The translations under genes were made by a program, and so were the position numbers. A stretch of DNA of 64,000 nucleotides from Hormiphora californensis (Eukaryota; Animalia; Ctenophora). Below the pieces are notes generated by a model. That model did no database searches. It was not told where the DNA came from and was given only the letters and a program-made list of their open reading frames with translations. Shown here in pieces: positions 4,068 through 14,365 of this stretch. The DNA lies in the NCBI GenBank assembly GCA_020137815.1, contig CM035354.1, forward strand, positions 4,464,001 to 4,528,000, written 5' to 3'. Each line of letters opens with the position of its first letter. Positions within the stretch are counted from its first letter, which is position 1.

Positions 4068-7000
4068 CAGGGAGGTGCTGCTACTGGTTGACATCTTGAA
4101 CCCTCTCTTTGGAGAGACTGTCCATAATATGACATGGGGATTTAGTACCCATCATATATTATTCTAGAAAGGTCCCTAAGTGCACACCTGCTTTGGGAGA
4201 GAGTACTATAAGTTTGGAGAGAACTATAGGTCTGCAATAAATTTAATGGAGTCAAATAGCCGGTAAGTGATTACTTGACCCCCTCCCTCTCAAACCTCAC
4301 ACCTGCCCGAGAAAAAGTCGTAACATTAACAATGAGACTTGAGAGGGGAAGATCTAGAGAGAAAGATAGAGAGATAGAGAGAGAGGGGTGATAGAGATTT
4401 TTAGAGGGAGAGGGAGCGAGAGAGCGTGTGTGAGAGAGAAAGAGAGAGTTAGGCCAGTGGTTGAGTGGACGAACATCTGCCATCAGATCGTTGTGTCGAG
4501 TATTGATGTTTTTGCTGCTTTCATTTTCTTTGGGGTACGTGACAATGATTTGATAGTCATATCGATCAATTTCATATAATCAACCAATGCAATGTTGCTT
4601 ACATATTTGTCATTCAATTATAGAATCCTGTTTCTCAGGTTGATACGGTTTGCAGTGTGTAACAAGAACAGTGAGATCGGGTATGCCCTCATGAGAGACT
4701 ACCTTTGTCAGGGAGATATCTCCTGGAGCGATCGCATAGAGGACACCGGAGTACGGTCTTTTGTTAAACTAGGTACAACTCGTAGCTAATCGTATACTGT
4801 CTTAGCTCCCCACAATGGGAGACTCTTTCTCTGGTTGTAATGCTGCCTCGGCTCTAATTCCATAACCCTTGAATCCTGTCACGTATTTTGTTTTTCAATC
4901 CCACAATAACCTAACTACAAAGCCTCCCTGGGCTGCAAGTCACGCACAAAATATTTCATTATGTTATTATATTTCAAACTTTTCAACACTACTTTAAACA
5001 AATTAATTTGAGTTTGCCGTCAATCGTTCCGATAACTGTGTTAGCATCTATTCTCTAATCTTATAGATCTCTGTTAGGCCTACTTTAACTTAACTTACGA
5101 GTGATATCAGTGAAGAGTTTGCTGTTGGCCGGCGTGCAACGGGTGTTTTAGGATGACCGTTACGAGTAATTATGACATATGTATCACTAAGAGTGATTTT
5201 GAAGACGTGTTATCAGGAGAAGTATTTAGTAATGATTATAAGGGTAGTGATTTGTTAGTGTGCCTTGAGAGGGGTGACACTGTTTGTCCGTCGTCTGTCC
5301 ATAAACCTCAGTTGTGGCATCTCCTCAAAGCCTGTTACAACATGCTTCCGGCGTCGGCACCGTTTTCTGTTCCTGGAGACCAGACTGATCTGAAAGAGTC
5401 GTTTGCAAAGCTGCACAAGGATCTGGTTTCCACTATCTCTGCTTTGGTCAAACCTATGGAGAATAGTAGAAGTGATATTGGTGGTGGTGATCCAGAGGAA
5501 CCGGTTACACCTACGATGAAACACTACGTGAATATTAAAACTGGTATCAATGAGGAAGGAGGGCCAGGATTCTGTGCGAAGAAGTGGACTGATGAGGTCA
5601 AACCCAAAGTGGAAACTGCGTTGAAGACGATACCGGTGGTGAGATCCAGAGTGAACAGTGACCATACCCGGCTGTATTTCCCTAATGAAGACCAGATGAA
5701 GGAAGCAGAGAAAGTTTTGACTCCTCTTGCACAGGACTGTTCTATGTCATTCTTCTCAGAGGAAGCCAAGAAGCTTGAACCAAAGGTTACCATTAATGAT
5801 TTGAACCCTGAACTACTGGAAAAGGAGACTATCCTGGCAGCGATTTTGGACAAAAATGAGGATATCAGAAAGCTTTATCATGAGGATAAGAAGTTGAAAG
5901 TGGTGTTTGTGAGCGAAAGAGATAGGTATGCAGTGATCCAGATGGCTCCAGAGATCCGGAGGCTTTTGTCTAACAACGGTGATAAACTCAACTTAGGTCT
6001 TCGACAACATTTTGTCAAGAACAGGTATCATGTGATTCAATGCTATCACTGTCAAGGATATGGACATATAGCAGGCTCAATCTACTGTCCTCAGAAGGAA
6101 AATCCTGTGTGCTGTTTTTGTGCTGGAACACACCAGACAAAGGACTGTAGAGCAAAGAAGAACAACGAGACTGGTAAGATGAAGTGTGTGAACTGTGCGG
6201 TGGGAGGATCAAGAGAGGACAAGAAGTATGCGAGGACCCATACAGCTTCTAGTATGTGGTGTCCCTCGTACATCAATGAACGAGCACGGCTTATGGAGAG
6301 GACTTCAGGTGTCAGCAAAGAGGAAAAAAACCTGTACTGGACGAGGACAAAGGAGGAACTACACAGGAAAAGACTTGGAAGATTGGGACATTAAATGTCC
6401 GCTCTCTTGTCAATAAAACTGGAGGTGTTATTTCACATCTGGAAGACGCTGATTGTGATATCTGTCTCATACAGGAAACATTTTTAAAGTCCACAGACAC
6501 GGGAAAACTCCAAGAAATCAGAGATAATGGATGGGATATATTCTCATGCCCCAGAGGAGATCGAGGAGGTGGGGGGATTGGAATTCTCTTTCGAGATGGC
6601 TTGGTTCTTCGACAGTGTCCGGTGAAGACTAAGTATAAATCATTTCAAGTTCAAGAGGTTCTCATCAGTGACAGGGACCAACCGAAGAGACTCTGTAATA
6701 TTTACCGCCCTCCATACACACCGAAGTCAAGACTTACGGAGGCAACTTTCCTGTCGGAGTTTGGTGACTACCTCTCTGAGCTTGTTATGAAACAAGGTAC
6801 CCCGATTATCGCTGGAGACCTAAATTTCCAGGTGCAAGATGCTAACAACTTCTATTCGAGGAAACTGTTGGAGCTCCTGGATTCGTTTGACCTTCGACAA
6901 AGGGTACCACTGTTGCCTACTCATAGGCATGGAGGCACCTTGGATCTGGTGATAACTACGAGAGAAACTGCTCTGGATGACATATCCATCTTTCCAAATG

Positions 7001-10000
7001 GTACTACTTCAGATCACTTCCTGGTGCGGTTTGGGATTCAAGTGAGACCTGACCTGTCTAACTCCCGTCTGAAGAAATCAGTGTTTCGAGAATATGTGGA
7101 CTACAAGTCAATGGATTTGGAGGGATTTAAAGAGGACTTGAAGAAAGCAGATTTTGAGGAAGGGAGGGATCCAGAGGAGGGTGTTGTGAACTTCTATCGT
7201 TGGCTGGAAGGGATAGTGGAAAAGCGAGTACCGAGGAAGCGGGTGAGGACGGGGAAAAAGTTTAAGCCGTGGAGGGATGAGGAACTTAGGGGATTACTTC
7301 GTAAGAGGAGGAGTGCGGAACGGTATTGGCGGAAACATGGAACTGAGGATGCGAAGCGGAGATTTAATGATCTGAAGAAACTGTATGGAAATATGGATAA
7401 GGACAAGAGGTCACTTTTCATCAAAGAGGATTTGGATGCAGTCAAAGGGGATCCGAAGAAACTACAAAATAAACTCCAAAAACTCCTGGGAAAGGCTGAA
7501 ACTATTCTCCCTGAAACTACTAGCTCTAAGAGCTTGGCTGATGATTTCTCACAGTTTTTTAGTTCCAAAGTGACCAAAATTCGGAACCAAGTTAACGAAG
7601 AACAGCAACAAGCTGGTGAATTTGAGGAACCTGGAAGAACTTGTCATACAACGTGGAAGGAATTCAGAGAGGTATCTGAGGAGGAACTTGTTTCAATTGT
7701 GAAATCTATGTCAAGTAAACACTGCGACCTTGACCCATTACCCACTTGGGTAGTTAAGGAGTGTATACGGGAACTTGCTCCTGTATTAACATCAATGGTG
7801 AACCACTCTCTCCATCATTCAACAGTAGCAGAAACTCTCCAGAAGGCGATCGTGTTCCCTACTATTAAGAATATGTATGGGGATCGGGAAGCTCTCAGTA
7901 ACTACCGTCCTGTTTCGAATATTCCATTCCTTTCGAAGCTCCTGGAGAAGGTAGTTCTCACGCAGCTAAATGATTACCTTGAACGGAATTCTCTTTTGGG
8001 CAAGCACCAGTCTGGTTATCGTGTTGGGCACAGCTGTGAAACTCTGTTAGCCAGCATGTTTGATGATGTATTAGGCGAGATGGATAAAGGAAATGTAGTG
8101 GCTCTCATTTGTTTGGACATGAGTGCTGCATTTGATACAGTGGATCATCGAAAGTTGTTGGAGGTGTTGCAGAATCGGTTTGGAGTTGATGGCGATCCTC
8201 TTCAATGGTTTAAGAGCTACCTGAGTTCCAGATCTTTCAGAGTCTCTGTGGGTGATTGTCTTTCGGAAACCCTGGCCTTACTATGTGGAGTACCCCAGGG
8301 GTCCCTTCTTGGTCCAATTTTGTTTCTACTATACATTGAAGCTGTGCAAGACATTGTGGAGCCTTATGGTCTTCGGATAAAACTATACGCGGATGACTCC
8401 CAGCTCTATGTGAGTCTGGTTCCTACGGATTCTACTGGCTGGTCGGAGGCAAAGGTGGATATTGAGGAATGTCTGGCAAAGGTGAAGAGGTGGATGGTAG
8501 GACAGTGGTTGAAGTGCAACGAGGCTAAGACAGAATTCATCCTCCTTGGAAAACGCAGTTCGTTAAGTAAAGTCACTTTCGATCCAGTAATCAACTTCGG
8601 TGGAACAGAAATCTTCCCTAGTGAATGTAGTGGAACAGATGGTAAGACACTAGGAATTCTCTTGGATCACAATCTAAATCTTGAACGACAGGTTAATAAT
8701 GTGAGGAAACAGTGTGGACTGATATTACGGAATCTCTGGCAATTACACAAGTGTTTTGATGTTACAACAAAGATCATGTTGGTGAAACAGTTGATCATTT
8801 CCAGAATTGATTACAGCAATATTTTGTATTGTGGACTTCCTGGCCGAGTTCTGAGCGGGCTCCAGAAACTTCTCAATGCCTGTGTTCGATTTGTATTTAA
8901 CCTCCATGGACACCAGGACAACTATATGGAGTATTTCAGGCAGTGTCATATTTTACCGATCTCCTACAGGCTGGACTTCAAAGCCTGTTTGATTGCCTAT
9001 AAAATAGTCAATGGAACAGCCCCGTGTTATCTCCAGGATTTGGTGCCACGTGATGAGACTTGGGGAACCTCTAGGACTACGAGGATGACTAATGTTCCGG
9101 ATCCCTATAGGTTAAAACATCCAAAGATGACCAGTATTAATGCCAACTCTAAGTTGAGACGTAGGAGGTTATCAGTATTCCTGCCTTCTGTCTGGAATGA
9201 GCTTCCCCTTGAGCTCAGGTCAATCCCCAACGTGGAAACCTTCAAAACCCGGCTGAAAACACATCTCTTCGTTGGTGCATTTGGAGTGGGTGATGGGGAA
9301 CCCATGGCTGAGTTGTAATGTTTGTTGTAGTTGTGGGGCCTGCGGGCAATCAGTGTCATCCTCTCTCTAGCCATGTTATTATTTCACTACCTAGTATCCT
9401 TTTTCCTAGCAGGTGTAAGTAAAGTGTTTTGAATTTATATCCACAGGTTTATGGGACCAGTTATTCCTTCAGTTTTATAAGTCCAGTTAATTTAGTCTTA
9501 CAATATACTGTTCTTTTTTCAACCAGAGTGTTCGTGTGTGTCATATATTTAATCGAGGATATACCGCTCTGATGACTCGTCGGAGCATTGCCAATATTTT
9601 GACATGTTTCCGTCGGGTATGGGCGGTATATAAGCGCGGAATATTATTATTATTATTATTATCAACCTAACTCACTTTGTACCCCCTCCCTCCTCCGAGC
9701 ACTATCTCCACATCCTGCATTCTCTCACATTCGTCTGATGGATATCAAATAACAGGCCCTTGTCTCTTGCACAAAGCACGTCCCTCTAGATAAAGACTAA
9801 GACGATAAAACTGTGTACGGCAGAATGAAAAGAATTTAAGAAGCCTGAAGGCTGAAGCCTGAAGCACTGTACTGTAAAAACTAAAAAGTGAACAATGAGA
9901 TTATTATAAAAACAATCTTAGATGATGCAAAACTTGCTTTTATTACTCTGCTGTTATGAACTGCCCCCAAAAACGAAGAACAACAATAACACAGAAGCAC

Positions 10001-11060
10001 GTGTACTGTGTTGTTATATAGTACGTGTGGGAATGTCTGACGTCATCATAACACTGCTGACGTCACGTTTTCTCCCACACAACAACATTGTCCCTTCCTT
10101 CTATCTTGTAATATGTTTTATCCAAATCTAGTTTAAATTCCTACGCACTCATTTATCCCTCACTCGAACGAACTCCATATTTTTTCACATACCGTACCCC
10201 AATAAACAGAGGAATTCTTTTCCAGTTTTTTTTCTCCGGAATAACTTCCTAGAAATATATTTCCAGGTCAGGACTGTCTATGTCACACTGAGGAGGAACA
10301 CTGGCCAGGATTATCTGATAACGATCATTCAATCAGTAGATAGATTCGTACACGACTTTCCATCCGACTAAGATTGAAGCCTTCAAACCATGTTTCTTTG
10401 GTGCTCTCAGAAAACGTACTCATGGTTGCATTTTGTGATGAGCGGAGGGACCAACTGCTTGAGTCACTGAAGCGACTGGCAAAGAAATTACTTAGGTTGT
10501 GATGTTGATGATGAGAAGAAAATGCGAACTGCAAGTGCTAGGTGTCAACTGATTGATGTGATATTAAAGATGTTTGCTAAATGGGTGGACTATGTCGTTT
10601 CAAATGATTGCCCTAAAAAACGGGTGAAGAGGCCTGAGAGTGAGAGTGAGATTGTGTATTTGGAACACTTCTCGGAACTTTCTGATTCCTTGGGAAGTTT
10701 GGTAGATTTGAGCAAAAGGCAGTATGACCTCAAAACTATTTTCATAGTGATAAAACAGATGGTCTGCCAAACAAACGTATTCCATGGTGCAGCAGCTTCA
10801 GTTTTTAACTTTCGAGAACTTGAAATACTCACAGAAAAAGATAAGTTCCTCTTCCAGATTAAATGTCGAGATTGCCAGTGATTTGGGATGCTGTCTTGTT
10901 AAACAGATTATCCACTGAAAGAATAATGTGTTTGTTGCGCTGAATAATATGATGTAGAAGCGGGCGATCCTAAAGTTTTTCAAGATTATAGAAAGATTTT
11001 CGTGAGAAGTCAGAGGTGTTGATTTAGATATGTCTTGAAAAACTTTGTATTTTAGCAACA
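4068..11060 (+). CDS. Unidentified multi-exon protein-coding gene (fragmented by apparent indel errors) hosting the full-length LINE in an intron
   Basis: Exon-like segments have canonical splice sites: about 4068-4262 (tttcag/...ccg|gtaagt), about 4453-4534 (|gtacgt), 4639-4772 (ttctcag|...ctag|gtac; LIRFAVCNKNSEIGYALMRDY...) and 10267 onward (tttccag|GT CAG GAC, phase-compatible with 4772). The last continues into ORF 10522..10881. No recognisable domain, and several frameshifts are needed. Confidence 0.4.
4972..5012 (+). other. Spliced-leader (SL) exon sequence, retro-copied (not an SL RNA gene)
   Basis: TTTCAAACTTTTCAACACTACTTTAAACAAATTAATTTGAG matches, from memory, the trans-spliced leader reported for Pleurobrachia/Hormiphora ctenophore mRNAs. 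It is followed by the LINE 5' UTR (TTTGCCG...), not by a GT donor and Sm-site intron. Confidence 0.85.
5153..6394 (+). CDS. LINE ORF1p, gag-like nucleic-acid chaperone with CCHC zinc knuckles
   Basis: 413-aa ORF directly upstream of ORF2. C-terminal knuckles: CYHCQGYGH...C, CCFCAGTHQTKDC and CVNC...H.....C. Confidence 0.9.
   Translation: MTVTSNYDICITKSDFEDVLSGEVFSNDYKGSDLLVCLERGDTVCPSSVHKPQLWHLLKACYNMLPASAPFSVPGDQTDLKESFAKLHKDLVSTISALVKPMENSRSDIGGGDPEEPVTPTMKHYVNIKTGINEEGGPGFCAKKWTDEVKPKVETALKTIPVVRSRVNSDHTRLYFPNEDQMKEAEKVLTPLAQDCSMSFFSEEAKKLEPKVTINDLNPELLEKETILAAILDKNEDIRKLYHEDKKLKVVFVSERDRYAVIQMAPEIRRLLSNNGDKLNLGLRQHFVKNRYHVIQCYHCQGYGHIAGSIYCPQKENPVCCFCAGTHQTKDCRAKKNNETGKMKCVNCAVGGSREDKKYARTHTASSMWCPSYINERARLMERTSGVSKEEKNLYWTRTKEELHRKRLGRLGH
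6280..9318 (+). CDS. LINE ORF2p: apurinic-like endonuclease plus reverse transcriptase
   Basis: The frame is open from 6280 (after TGA 6277-6279). APE motifs: KIGTLNVRSL (about 6379), CLIQET, IYRPP, AGDLN, TLDLVI, SDHFLV. RT motifs: NYRPVSNIPFLSKLLEK, QSGYR, LDMSAAFDTVDH, GVPQGSLLGP, YADDSQL, plus SRIDYSN typical of L2/CR1-group elements. The ORF track start (6601) is a TTG inside the APE domain. Confidence 0.95.
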   Translation, partial: TSTAYGEDFRCQQRGKKPVLDEDKGGTTQEKTWKIGTLNVRSLVNKTGGVISHLEDADCDICLIQETFLKSTDTGKLQEIRDNGWDIFSCPRGDRGGGGIGILFRDGLVLRQCPVKTKYKSFQVQEVLISDRDQPKRLCNIYRPPYTPKSRLTEATFLSEFGDYLSELVMKQGTPIIAGDLNFQVQDANNFYSRKLLELLDSFDLRQRVPLLPTHRHGGTLDLVITTRETALDDISIFPNGTTSDHFLVRFGIQVRPDLSNSRLKKSVFREYVDYKSMDLEGFKEDLKKADFEEGRDPEEGVVNFYRWLEGIVEKRVPRKRVRTGKKFKPWRDEELRGLLRKRRSAERYWRKHGTEDAKRRFNDLKKLYGNMDKDKRSLFIKEDLDAVKGDPKKLQNKLQKLLGKAETILPETTSSKSLADDFSQFFSSKVTKIRNQVNEEQQQAGEFEEPGRTCHTTWKEFREVSEEELVSIVKSMSSKHCDLDPLPTWVVKECIRELAPVLTSMVNHSLHHSTVAETLQKAIVFPTIKNMYGDREALSNYRPVSNIPFLSKLLEKVVLTQLNDYLERNSLLGKHQSGYRVGHSCETLLASMFDDVLGEMDKGNVVALICLDMSAAFDTVDHRKLLEVLQNRFGVDGDPLQWFKSYLSSRSFRVSVGDCLSETLALLCGVPQGSLLGPILFLLYIEAVQDIVEPYGLRIKLYADDSQLYVSLVPTDSTGWSEAKVDIEECLAKVKRWMVGQWLKCNEAKTEFILLGKRSSLSKVTFDPVINFGGTEIFPSECSGTDGKTLGILLDHNLNLERQVNNVRKQCGLILRNLWQLHKCFDVTTKIMLVKQLIISRIDYSNILYCGLPGRVLSGLQKLLNACVRFVFNLHGHQDNYMEYFRQCHILPISYRLDFKACLIAYKIVNGTAPCYLQDLVPRDETWGTSRTTRMTNVPDPYRLKHPKMTSINANSKLRRRRLSVFLPSVWNELPLELRSIPNVETFKTRLKTHLFVGAFGVGDGEPMAEL

Positions 11061-11238: not shown

Positions 11239-13099
11239 CTAGCTATGAATAGTAAAAACACCGGTAATATTGAGGACTGCTACCACTAGGAACATAAGGT
11301 AGAGTCCGAACAGGTAAAACCCGTACCATCGCCTAACATTGAACCTCATCAGCGGTATCGCCACCAAGTGGGAGCATATCGTGAACATGAGGAACCCAGA
11401 GGAAATAATGAGACTGTCTCCCAGTTTCAACTCCAAATTCTTGCCGTTTTTTATGATGGAGAGAGTGGACGCTAGACCTATACCCAGTAACATGTTGAGA
11501 CAAGGTCCACCGATGCACGCTGATACCGCCATTTGTGGGTAACCCTGTTTTGCCATGGCCACATCTGATACAAGATCCCCGACACTGTTAGCCCAGGAGA
11601 GCACTGTGAGACCGAGGATTGCACTGCTGATTGCAAATATATGCCCGAATGTAGAGAGAAGAGCTACAATCTCACTGGCGACAGTGTAAATCCACATGAT
11701 GCTCATAAAGAAGCCCAGTAGAGTGAACACTGGCTTGTAGTAGCAGGGGTTCTCTCCCTGTGATGACGTCAGCAGAATGATGGCCGTAATGAGGATTCCC
11801 TATGACTGCCACAACCAGGGGAACTGGGACGGAGAGGACGGTCTTGTTAGTGAACCCCAGGAGGAAGACTGCTGCAAGGGGACATATGGTGAAGTGGAGG
11901 GCATTCAGGAGCTTGTTCCAGCCGTATAAAGGTAGGGTGAGATCAACTACTGGGATGGTTAGGGTGAAGACAAGGTTTGCTGGGACTGAAACTATGTCAA
12001 ATATTTTATCCTTCAGGGAGAATTCTTCATCCCAATCCTTGAGATGTAGGGGATTTATTCCTGCTATAAAGTTTAGTATGACCTGTTGTGCTGCTCCTCG
12101 GCTGTAGGACGGGTACTCGTACGAGGAGTTAGTCCGTTGAATCCCTCCAAGGCTAACATCCGGTCTCAGCAGGGGTGTCTCAGCGGTGCTAATCCTGGAC
12201 CCTGTCCTCTCTCTTGTTCCGTCTGCGAGGTATGGGAAACTTTGTGCTACAGCAAGAGCCCGGGCAATTGCATGTGATTTGATCCCCGGGACCTCTGTCC
12301 AACTATCCTCATTTTCATAAAGGTCATCATCCTGGATGTTGTCATCGACATCATTATCAATAATGGGAATACTCTCCCGATCATCGGCCACACCCAGATC
12401 CCGATATGCCACATCTTCTGCGTAGTCAGTATCCACGGTAACGGGATTCACCAGAATACTCCCTCCTCGTGTCTTGATGAACCGCTGGAAGACAAACCTG
12501 CCAACTATTACTAGACCAACATAGACTCCATACAGGACGATGTATCCAATGGCTGTAGCTAGGTTTAGTTGTTTGTGGTAGCAGTTGTACCAGGTCCAGT
12601 AGATGGCTCCCAGGTAGAAGATACAATCCCTGAAGAAGGGTCTCCTGGCGATATTGAAACCATCTTGGGATATGGTGACAGCTCCAATCACCATGGTGTT
12701 CACAAACAAACCAGCACCAAACATGGCACCCAGCGCAAGGAAGTTTGTACTGAGTTGCCCCGCCCCGAGAGCCACAATGCTACTAAAAATGTCGGGTGCT
12801 CCGTTACCCAGCGCTAGGAATGTCACCCCCGCTACGTTCTGGGAGAGCCGGAGCATTTTTGAGATGACCGTGAGGGCTGGACAGAAGAATTCCTCCGCTG
12901 TGATGGCGAGGCATATAAACAGGTAGGCGGTCCATAGGAAGAGAACTATATCAGCTAGAGGTATTACTGCGGGTAATGTACAAAACGGGAACTGGAGGTA
13001 GTGGATAAGAGCATCGTTATCCGAACAAGAGTCTGTTGTCTGGATGAACTCGCATTTGTTGGCGGCGGGGAGGTCACGGAAATGCCCACAGTTAACCAT
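11239..13099 (-). CDS. SLC8B1: Cation/Ca2+ exchanger of the NCLX/CCX family (SLC8B1-like), with one apparent +1 indel
   Basis: Alpha-1 repeat AGVTFLALGNGAPDIFSS (ORF 11672..13315) and alpha-2 repeat LGLTVLSWANSVGDLVSD (ORF 11239..11730). Removing one base from ATA GGG A ATC (about 11798) joins the two ORFs (VIGILITAIILLTSS...KPVFTLLGF). The likely start is the ATG at 13099, just after a ttttag acceptor. Confidence 0.9.
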
Positions 13100-13680
13100 G
13101 GAGCCTAAAACATAGAATTTGGTTATCTCGTGAGTTATTAGAAGAACTTGAGTAATAAATTGTAAGTGAGTAAAAGTGTTCAGCAAGCAGACTGCAGAGT
13201 TCCAACTTCCGTGCACATCCATTATGAAAATAACAAGCAGAGAGAAGCTCTGAGATATCATTGACGTTGTCAACACTACGATAATCTCAAAATAAACAAT
13301 GTACTGTAGTGCCATTAAGTCACCAAAATGCTAAACAAATAAATAGTGAGAGAAACTCAATTCAAAGCGGCTTTTCGGTGTGAAGAACTTGTTGCCGAAT
13401 TTGTTTGGGCAATGGTTACGTAAATGGCCAAGACTCATGACATAGATATAATAGAATTGTCATTTGTCAAGATCTGTTAGAACACTGAATAGCAATCAGA
13501 TGAACGGTACACCCGCCGCACGGTGCAGACGTGACTGCGGCGTTCATTTCTCAGACTTTTATGGAGTATGCTAGATCCAGTAACCATCATCATCATAATC
13601 TTCAAATTGCTTAAATTTTAAACACATTGGGTTTAAAGGAGGGGCACACCGCCCACGAATCTTACTTTTTTACGGATTCA

Positions 13681-14365
13681 ATGAGGCCCCTCGGAAATGT
13701 TCAAGTCTTAATGAACTTAATGAAACACTTTATTACACAATCATAAAAGGTGTCAGTCTCTCCGACCTCCCCCCTTCGCCCGAACCGCTAGTACCCAATC
13801 CAAGATTGAATTCCCATTCTGAGTCACATAACCCCTCACGGGTGGATTGTCCGGGTACTGATCGAGCCACCGTCCCAGCACGACCTTAAACGTGTCCAAA
13901 GTCTCTGCCGTGTTGACATTTTTCGGTAATGCATTCCATAACCGAGCAGACCTTACACCGAAGGAGTTGAAGTATTTTGTTGATATTGACTTCTGTGCTC
14001 CGCTGTACAGGTTTGGAACTTCGGCTTTTATTCCAAGCCGTTCGTGATGATAAAACCGGGTTCCGGTGCTATTTGGGGCGACACCATTGTTGATTTTCCA
14101 TAGCTGAATAATAGTGTATCGTTCTCTTCGTCTTTGTAACGACATGAGGTGGAGTTTTTTCATTCGCTCCCAGTAGTCGAGGTTTTCCATTCCCTCAATC
14201 CTTCTTGTAAAGAACCGTTGGATGTTCTCAAGGGCCTGTCATGCACAATCAAGTCACGCCCACCAATCACAGCTCAGAACGCGCGGAGTGCTTCGCGCGT
14301 TCTGTGCTGTGATTGGTGGGCGTGACTTGATTGTGCATGACTTGAACATTTCCGAGGGGCCTCAT
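13681..14365. mobile_element. About 152-bp palindromic MITE interrupted by a LINE fragment
   Basis: The left arm ATGAGGCCCCTCGGAAATGTTCAAGTC (13681-13707) is the reverse complement of 14339-14365. Region 14241-14338 is a near-perfect hairpin centred near 14290. The element is flanked by the 3-bp direct repeat TCA (13678-13680 and 14366-14368). Confidence 0.8.
13708..14237 (-). mobile_element. 5'-truncated CR1-like LINE fragment (RT C-terminus, 3' UTR and short tandem tail)
   Basis: ORF 13753..14190 and its upstream frame read ALENIQRFFTRRIEGMENLDYWERMKKLHLMSLQRRRERY...ARLWNALP...FK, a typical CR1-group ORF2 C-terminus. The minus-strand tail is TTCATTAAG-TTCATTAA, and GTC is repeated at both junctions. 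Confidence 0.85.

Follow-up and report, generated by a model that had tools for sequence, protein, structure and literature searches.

We analyzed a 64,000-nucleotide (nt) stretch of the genome of the ctenophore Hormiphora californensis (GCA_020137815.1, contig CM035354.1, positions 4,464,001 to 4,528,000 of the forward strand; hereafter the window) and found in it a long interspersed nuclear element (LINE) whose genomic 5' end is an exon of the host: the spliced leader (SL) that is trans-spliced onto host RNAs. The element is an intact non-long-terminal-repeat retrotransposon of the APE type, because it has a first open reading frame (ORF1), an open ORF2 frame with a complete APE endonuclease domain and a reverse transcriptase domain, a 3' untranslated region (UTR) and a (TAT)7 tail (Table 1). 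In a Pfam search of ORF2 (window 6280-9315), the endonuclease spanned residues 37-246 and profile positions 2-225 of 225 (Exo_endo_phos, E = 2e-12), and the reverse transcriptase spanned residues 539-755 (RVT_1, E = 1.4e-26); ORF1 had no Pfam match. The C-terminus of ORF2 (...FKTRLKTHLF...) and the microsatellite tail form a combination (FK..LKT.LF plus microsatellite) that would link the element to the CR1/L2-like LINE clade. Some 40 dispersed copies, among which 5' truncation was seen, fit the LINE class (the tail was checked at the focal copy), and the focal element is a recently active member of its family.

The first 41 nt of the element occur once in the window, and none of 100 dinucleotide shuffles matched them. 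They are identical to bases 4-44 of the 44-nt leader published for H. californensis, which was found on at least 56% of Iso-Seq reads (PMC8527503). In run X2, which is labelled as the same species and whose record is silent on RNA or DNA, 483 contigs covered only 4972-5012 and then diverged from the window. The same exon (hereafter SL-A) is found elsewhere in the genome with a GTAAGCTGAG donor, a stem, an Sm-like CCTTTTGG site and a terminal hairpin (for example, exon L092:669-709), downstream of a conserved region of ~70 nt that ends ATCAGCAG. A gene-specific pattern search of the genome returned 13 true SL-A genes and one more with a 1-nt deletion, laid out as three divergent pairs (C5, C9 and C11), one isolated gene (C12) and seven clustered genes (C13). 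The paired genes stand head-to-head, ~530-610 bp apart, and the spacer between them forms a long inverted repeat with abundant CACGTG motifs. The 41-mer of the window is thus the host spliced-leader exon; however, this copy is not an SL RNA gene, since it has the LINE 5'UTR in place of a donor and intron (TTTGCC follows directly) and its upstream flank is unique. That flank ends TTATTATA and resembles the (TAT)n tail.

The original prediction took the 41-mer for the species SL, which the published leader and the true SL genes bear out, and it correctly noted both the TTATTAT flank and the lack of a GT donor or SL-RNA intron. It placed the start of the 41-mer 140 nt before the ORF1 ATG, a distance that is right for the end of the leader (5013-5152); the start of the 41-mer lies 181 nt before the ATG.

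Table 1. Features of the focal LINE, its putative host intron, the SL genes and related families. Positions without a prefix are window positions; L and G000:C prefixes are our handles for loci in the genome.
Feature	Position	Strand	Remarks
Putative upstream host exon	4650..4772	+	Open frame, after TTTCTCAG, then GT at 4773; predicted from sequence
Possible upstream copy of 7-bp target-site duplication, TTATTAT	4964..4970	+	Indistinguishable from the element's own (TAT)n tail
SL-A leader exon copy (bases 4-44 of the published 44-nt leader)	4972..5012	+	No donor; 5' end of the element
5'UTR, 140 nt	5013..5152	+	Leader joined at one nucleotide in every 5'-complete copy
ORF1, 413 aa	5153..6394	+	ATG start at 5153
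ORF2 frame, 1012 codons	6280..9318	+	-1 frame relative to ORF1, 115-nt overlap; no early ATG
3'UTR, 323 nt	9319..9641	+	GCGGTATATAAGCGCGG motif at its end, just 5' of the tail; read from sequence
(TAT)7 microsatellite tail	9642..9662	+	3' end of the element; read from sequence
Putative downstream host exon	10267..10343	+	After TTTCCAG; predicted from sequence
SL-A gene loci	G000:C5:6431355/6431966 (L088); C9:4528278/4528847 (L092); C11:221850/222496 (L093); C12:4023251; C13:3181645-3195351
SL-B gene	G000:C13:2741193-2741234 (L133:89-130)		ATCAGCAG start context, GTAAGCTGA donor, Sm-like CTTTTGG, terminal hairpin
Neighboring (TAT)n family, example	L010:1501-2715		Also L001, L014, L020, L102-L132
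Families tied to SL-A or SL-B	Families in L074/L075/L077..., L065/L069/L076..., SL-B list

To follow the leader through the focal family, we used the 300 nt 3' of the leader as a query and scored 40 matches (seven further candidates were left unscored). In 30 of the 30 loci fetched, the leader was fused at the base equivalent to window 5013, and the flanks differed except in one pair of segmental duplicates. Eight more divergent matches (78-92% identity) all had the leader at this same junction, which gives 38/38 5'-complete copies with SL-A, a single junction and unrelated flanks. The two matches that were leaderless are both 5' truncations; the one on C4 was read directly, and the one on C11 was judged from the start of its alignment. 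One alignment that began at query base 90, directly behind an AG, was considered as an alternative junction and proved to be a plain leaderless truncation. Two younger subfamilies, which have diverged by 11-15% from that of the window in the adjacent 300 nt, have a perfect leader, and in old copies (78-89% identity) the leader has decayed in step with the rest of the copy. Mean pairwise diversity among the copies rose from 0.4% in the leader to 1.2% in the 5'UTR and to 4.7-16% in ORF1, which puts the diversity of the 5'UTR 4-13 times below that of ORF1. The inherited 5' terminus of the family is therefore the host SL-A exon, held at one fixed junction through all subfamilies. Fusion at the same nucleotide with unrelated flanks is what the original prediction had asked of the full-length copies, and it was seen in every one; a one-off template switch, a shared non-SL extension at the 5' end and an insertion into an SL gene are excluded by the same 38 copies. 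In one old copy (L101:1-~60; G000:C3:4867646-4867705) the upstream stretch reads N and only the 3' two-thirds of the leader are visible.

We then examined how far genomic copies reach into the leader by scoring the bases that precede 70 distinct leader heads starting TTTCAAAC. A G stood at position -1 in 44 of them (63%) against a background of 16% (P = 6e-19), and 19 of the 70 had AG before the leader (P = 7e-11); the bases beyond were random, with no sequence common to the copies. Most genomic copies are without the first 1-3 bases of the leader; complete heads occur in both young and old subfamilies, one copy (L094) carries GAG followed by the 41-mer, and the focal family reaches the G or AG at the same share as other families. 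The copy in the window is itself preceded by TA. With CAG|TTTC in the SL-A gene and GAG at the head of the published leader, we infer that this A or G is the first base of the leader RNA. The DNA heads would then stop 0-3 nt short of the RNA's 5' terminus, as expected of run-off reverse transcription. Such ends, together with the exon-only fusion at the splice boundary, point to a mature trans-spliced RNA that was copied almost to its 5' end as the template. The G/AG pattern also argues against progressive 5' erosion through truncated parents. The focal family almost certainly originated from trans-spliced RNA, and the earlier proposal that the LINE RNA was trans-spliced and then copied nearly to the cap is upheld by the fixed junction in 38/38 copies and by heads that reach the first bases of the leader.

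The focal LINE is one of many leader-headed bodies in this genome. We counted 507 SL-A copies (at most 3 mismatches), and the leaders at 60 sampled loci were followed by more than 30 unrelated bodies, many of them recurring families. In most of these bodies a long ORF begins no more than some tens of nt past the junction. A few leader-headed ORFs matched reverse transcriptase, PHD, zinc-knuckle or esterase-type Pfam profiles, and most others that were tested had no Pfam match. An ORF with both 2OG-Fe(II) oxygenase and GDSL-lipase matches (L073:1560-3005 and L085) may represent either an unusual type of ORF1 or a retrogene of the host. The genome paper counted 718 leader sequences, treated them as spliced-leader loci and suspected that shared first exons were mapping artefacts (PMC8527503). 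About 97% of these 718 loci are the heads of retrocopies and not leader genes, because only ~15 loci carry a donor and an SL-RNA body; leader-headed retrocopies therefore account for the artefactual shared first exons. Tandem leader-leader arrays were searched for and none was found, there being only two matches with 3 mismatches each: at G000:C8:3264702-3264734 and 3267682-3267714, the preceding 15-mer resembles the 3' end of the leader, which may reflect a decayed tandem or chance.

A second leader, SL-B, heads a further set of bodies. It is 42 nt long and shares its first 11 nt and a terminal TTGAG with SL-A (for example, copy L116:37-78). At least one SL-B gene has a donor and an Sm-like site (Table 1), and SL-B is a real spliced leader. 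The genome paper restricts its list to leaders with more than 90% identity to SL-A, and SL-B is absent from its description (PMC8527503). Dispersed SL-B copies number ~139-154 and sit on a wide variety of bodies, several of which are also found under SL-A, in some cases with junctions shifted past a TTTCAG. The genome-wide search for other SL-headed families suggested by the original prediction thus returned dozens of unrelated bodies under the two leaders. Leader type is strongly tied to family: some families were seen with SL-A only (including three with long 5'UTRs), some with SL-B only, with bodies that start GATGCTTATTG or CATTATTGATAATGG, and others are mixed.

One mixed family proved informative on how leaders are acquired. 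This neighboring (TAT)n-tailed family has a body of ~1.15 kb that starts CAGGAAGATGAATCC and contains a single 333-aa ORF without a Pfam match, the ATG of which lies 8 nt past the junction. Its short 3'UTR ends GCGGGATATAA...(TAT)8, with a GCGG.ATATAA motif before the tail like that of the focal LINE, and in this element we see a probable non-autonomous partner of LINEs with a (TAT)n tail. Its 5'-complete copies number 36-37 (36 in a search by body only), none of them leaderless. The junction was long (SL-A|CAGGAAG) in 23 copies and short (SL-A|GAAG) in three, while 11 copies had SL-B at the same junction, one with a 1-nt difference. The three short-junction copies belong to three different subfamilies, each differing by 0.3-3.9% from a long-junction copy, so the shift past the CAG arose at least three times. 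Both subfamilies of the family include SL-B-headed copies, at 0-2 differences per 122-131 nt from SL-A-headed ones. Judged from these near-identical bodies, the leader is exchanged independently of the body. Gene conversion is an unlikely source of the SL-A/SL-B exchange, as the upstream flanks share no homology. Every candidate parent is itself leader-headed, and the new leader was therefore spliced exactly at the terminal AG of the old one. For the neighboring family, recycling of the leader at its own AG is thus directly supported by these comparisons.

These observations suggest the following cycle. The RNA of the LINE family was SL-trans-spliced, and reverse transcriptase copied the mature RNA up to 0-3 nt from its 5' end, with insertion by target-primed reverse transcription; the same holds for dozens of other retroelement families of this genome. 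The leader-headed copy could then be transcribed from outside, for example by read-through from a host gene, and the 3' end of the old leader (...TTGAG|) could serve as a trans-splice acceptor, at which a fresh capped leader would replace the old leader together with any upstream flank. The evidence for the exchange, the acceptor and the replacement comes from the neighboring family, and for the focal LINE these steps are argued by analogy. The outcome would be a precise, capped 5' end that is re-created with no need of an internal promoter. Reuse of the terminal AG, which the original prediction proposed for the focal LINE, therefore holds in the neighboring family (both leaders at one junction, three CAG shifts, no leaderless copy) but finds no such support in the focal family, all 38 copies of which have SL-A. 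We lean slightly towards a renewal of the leader in every or most cycles of the focal family.

Several observations weigh against that renewal. A direct pattern search found no SL-B joined to the focal UTR, and 0/38 copies had SL-B, an outcome with a chance of 1e-4 given that SL-B makes up 22% of the leader copies of the genome; the use of SL-B also differs between the focal and neighboring families (Fisher P = 1.7e-4). Among the focal copies there was no alternative junction and no leader joined at the first downstream AG. Renewal in the focal family is therefore either SL-A-specific and very precise, or absent. A G at -3 (GAG) makes a weak 3' splice-site acceptor. The conserved 140-nt 5'UTR could, from its low diversity, hold an internal promoter, and two other SL-A-only families also have long 5'UTRs. 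Finally, the contigs of two runs left the LINE body uncovered except for one piece from a seawater sample (run X1, a library labelled RNA-Seq, of uncertain kind). This contig of 511 nt is 96% identical to the window over 5131-5627, in the ORF1 region, and a related copy may be expressed in the wild.

The alternative that best survives is that the leader of the focal family is a fossil. It would derive from a single ancient event of trans-splicing and retrotransposition, and the leader would now be a selected part of the 5'UTR, inherited without new trans-splicing and transcribed from an internal promoter, located in the leader itself or in the 140-nt UTR, with a start at or near the first base of the leader. 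The uniform SL-A heads and invariant junction agree with such a history, as do the low diversity of the 5'UTR relative to ORF1, which a functional promoter or UTR would also show, and the strong binding of leader type to family in several families. However, transcription would have to start exactly at the natural first bases of the leader despite a random flank, and the share of focal copies that reach the G or AG equals that of families that are demonstrably re-spliced. Furthermore, most copies are without the first 1-3 bases, so that copying from ordinary parents should wear the 5' end down; complete heads are nonetheless present in young as well as old subfamilies, and leader renewal does take place in neighboring families of this genome. 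We regard a fossil leader as possible but rather doubtful.

Far less probable is a set of hidden leaderless masters, with a natural outron and acceptor, of which the leader-headed copies would be dead-end retrocopies made from trans-spliced mRNA. Masters of this kind would explain the fixed junction and uniform 5' ends without recourse to a weak GAG acceptor; however, none of the 38 5'-complete focal copies is leaderless (the two leaderless matches being truncations and the seven candidates unscored), and neither is any of 36 copies of the neighboring family. Template switching by reverse transcriptase has a precedent in U6/L1 chimeras, and a switch onto SL RNA, an insertion into an SL gene or an SL gene derived from the element would each put leader sequence at the 5' end of a LINE, but we consider such artefacts a negligible prospect, given that the copies have unrelated flanks, none of which matches the conserved upstream region of SL genes, that no donor or SL intron lies 3' of the leader, that the exon alone is fused at the splice boundary (which a switch onto whole SL RNA would not produce), that both leaders head dozens of unrelated bodies and that the true SL genes lie at separate loci.

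Returning to renewal by trans-splicing, we advance a broader proposal tentatively, as something close to an even call: many ctenophore retroelements, the focal LINE included, would be effectively promoterless and dependent on SL trans-splicing, the 3' part of the leader serving as a portable acceptor. Copies in transcribed regions would be cut from their flank and re-capped with a fresh leader, and would thereby become fit again for translation and retrotransposition; this would be a general replication strategy of dozens of families under two leader classes, with the choice of leader set by family context. The original prediction placed the focal LINE in sense orientation within a putative host intron at 4773-10266. 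We rate this placement as no more than plausible: the GT and AG are in place, a frame is open up to 4772, and the two predicted exons are without contig cover in the two runs.

Other LINEs adjoin leader sequence or re-create their 5' ends in different ways. NeSL-1, SLACS, CZAR and CRE are site-specific LINEs that interrupt SL genes and have SL-gene sequence on both sides. In them, as here, a LINE physically adjoins leader-exon sequence; in contrast, the Hormiphora LINE has unrelated flanks and the exon only, joined at the splice boundary. The original prediction had set these elements apart as a different phenomenon, and the 38 copies, with differing flanks of which none is SL-gene-like, agree with it. 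R2 and L1Tc process their 5' ends with HDV-like ribozymes (HDV, hepatitis delta virus), and other LINEs use internal promoters. These devices likewise restore a defined 5' end to elements that would otherwise lose their promoter or are transcribed together with their surroundings; however, the means in Hormiphora would be host SL trans-splicing, which supplies the cap too, and neither self-cleavage nor an internal promoter.

Relict leaders on retroposed genes of dinoflagellates, which the original prediction mentioned, are documented: retroposed genes carry a genome-encoded relict of the dinoflagellate spliced leader (DinoSL), and such copies can be trans-spliced again (PMC5585692, PMC6050394, PMC12014239). 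There, as here, a DNA leader at the 5' end marks an intronless, reverse-transcribed copy of a trans-spliced RNA. The DinoSL carriers, however, are retrocopies of host genes, whereas the carriers in Hormiphora are autonomous and non-autonomous retrotransposon families in which the leader is the inherited 5' terminus. Re-splicing of DinoSL also leaves tandem truncated relics; none was found in Hormiphora, where, in the neighboring family, the old leader is replaced exactly at its own terminal AG. In Hydra, ~30% of Iso-Seq reads of transposable elements carry the host leader (PMC12220107), so that transposable-element RNAs use host SL trans-splicing there as well; the Hydra report, however, is at the RNA level only and describes no leader-headed genomic copies, fixed junction or leader exchange (PMC12220107). 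In the literature that we searched there were no retrotransposon families with a leader as their genomic 5' terminus and no leader exchange, although absence there is not proof.

A LINE must rebuild a defined, translatable 5' end in each generation. The SL machinery appears to do so, cap included, and would be a third solution beside internal promoters and ribozymes. The published Hormiphora genome also reads differently in this light, with true SL genes that are few and clustered and with a second leader class. The leader tag offers a built-in marker of full-length retrotransposition events, and the SL-A/SL-B exchange allows acceptor choice to be studied, as a natural experiment, in an early-branching animal. 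In Mnemiopsis, 491 leader copies were counted (PMC8527503), and the phenomenon may therefore be ctenophore-wide.

We also observed head-to-head inverted pairs of leader-headed copies (L003, L009, L012 and L021; G000:C2:8210001/8210056, C3:400014/400063 and C3:1526722/1526765). Their bodies begin with a hammerhead-like CUGAUGA-stem-GAAAC core and are reminiscent of Penelope-like elements. A hammerhead ribozyme in these bodies was rejected, as there was no Rfam match to one at E <= 0.01 and the only matches were spurious ones to microRNA hairpins, arising from the inverted copies. Within the window, 3' of the focal LINE, the minus strand holds at 13756-13998 a fragment that encodes the C-terminus of a LINE ORF2 (...FKVVLGRWL...), and a 552-aa minus-strand ORF at 11675-13330 adjoins this fragment.

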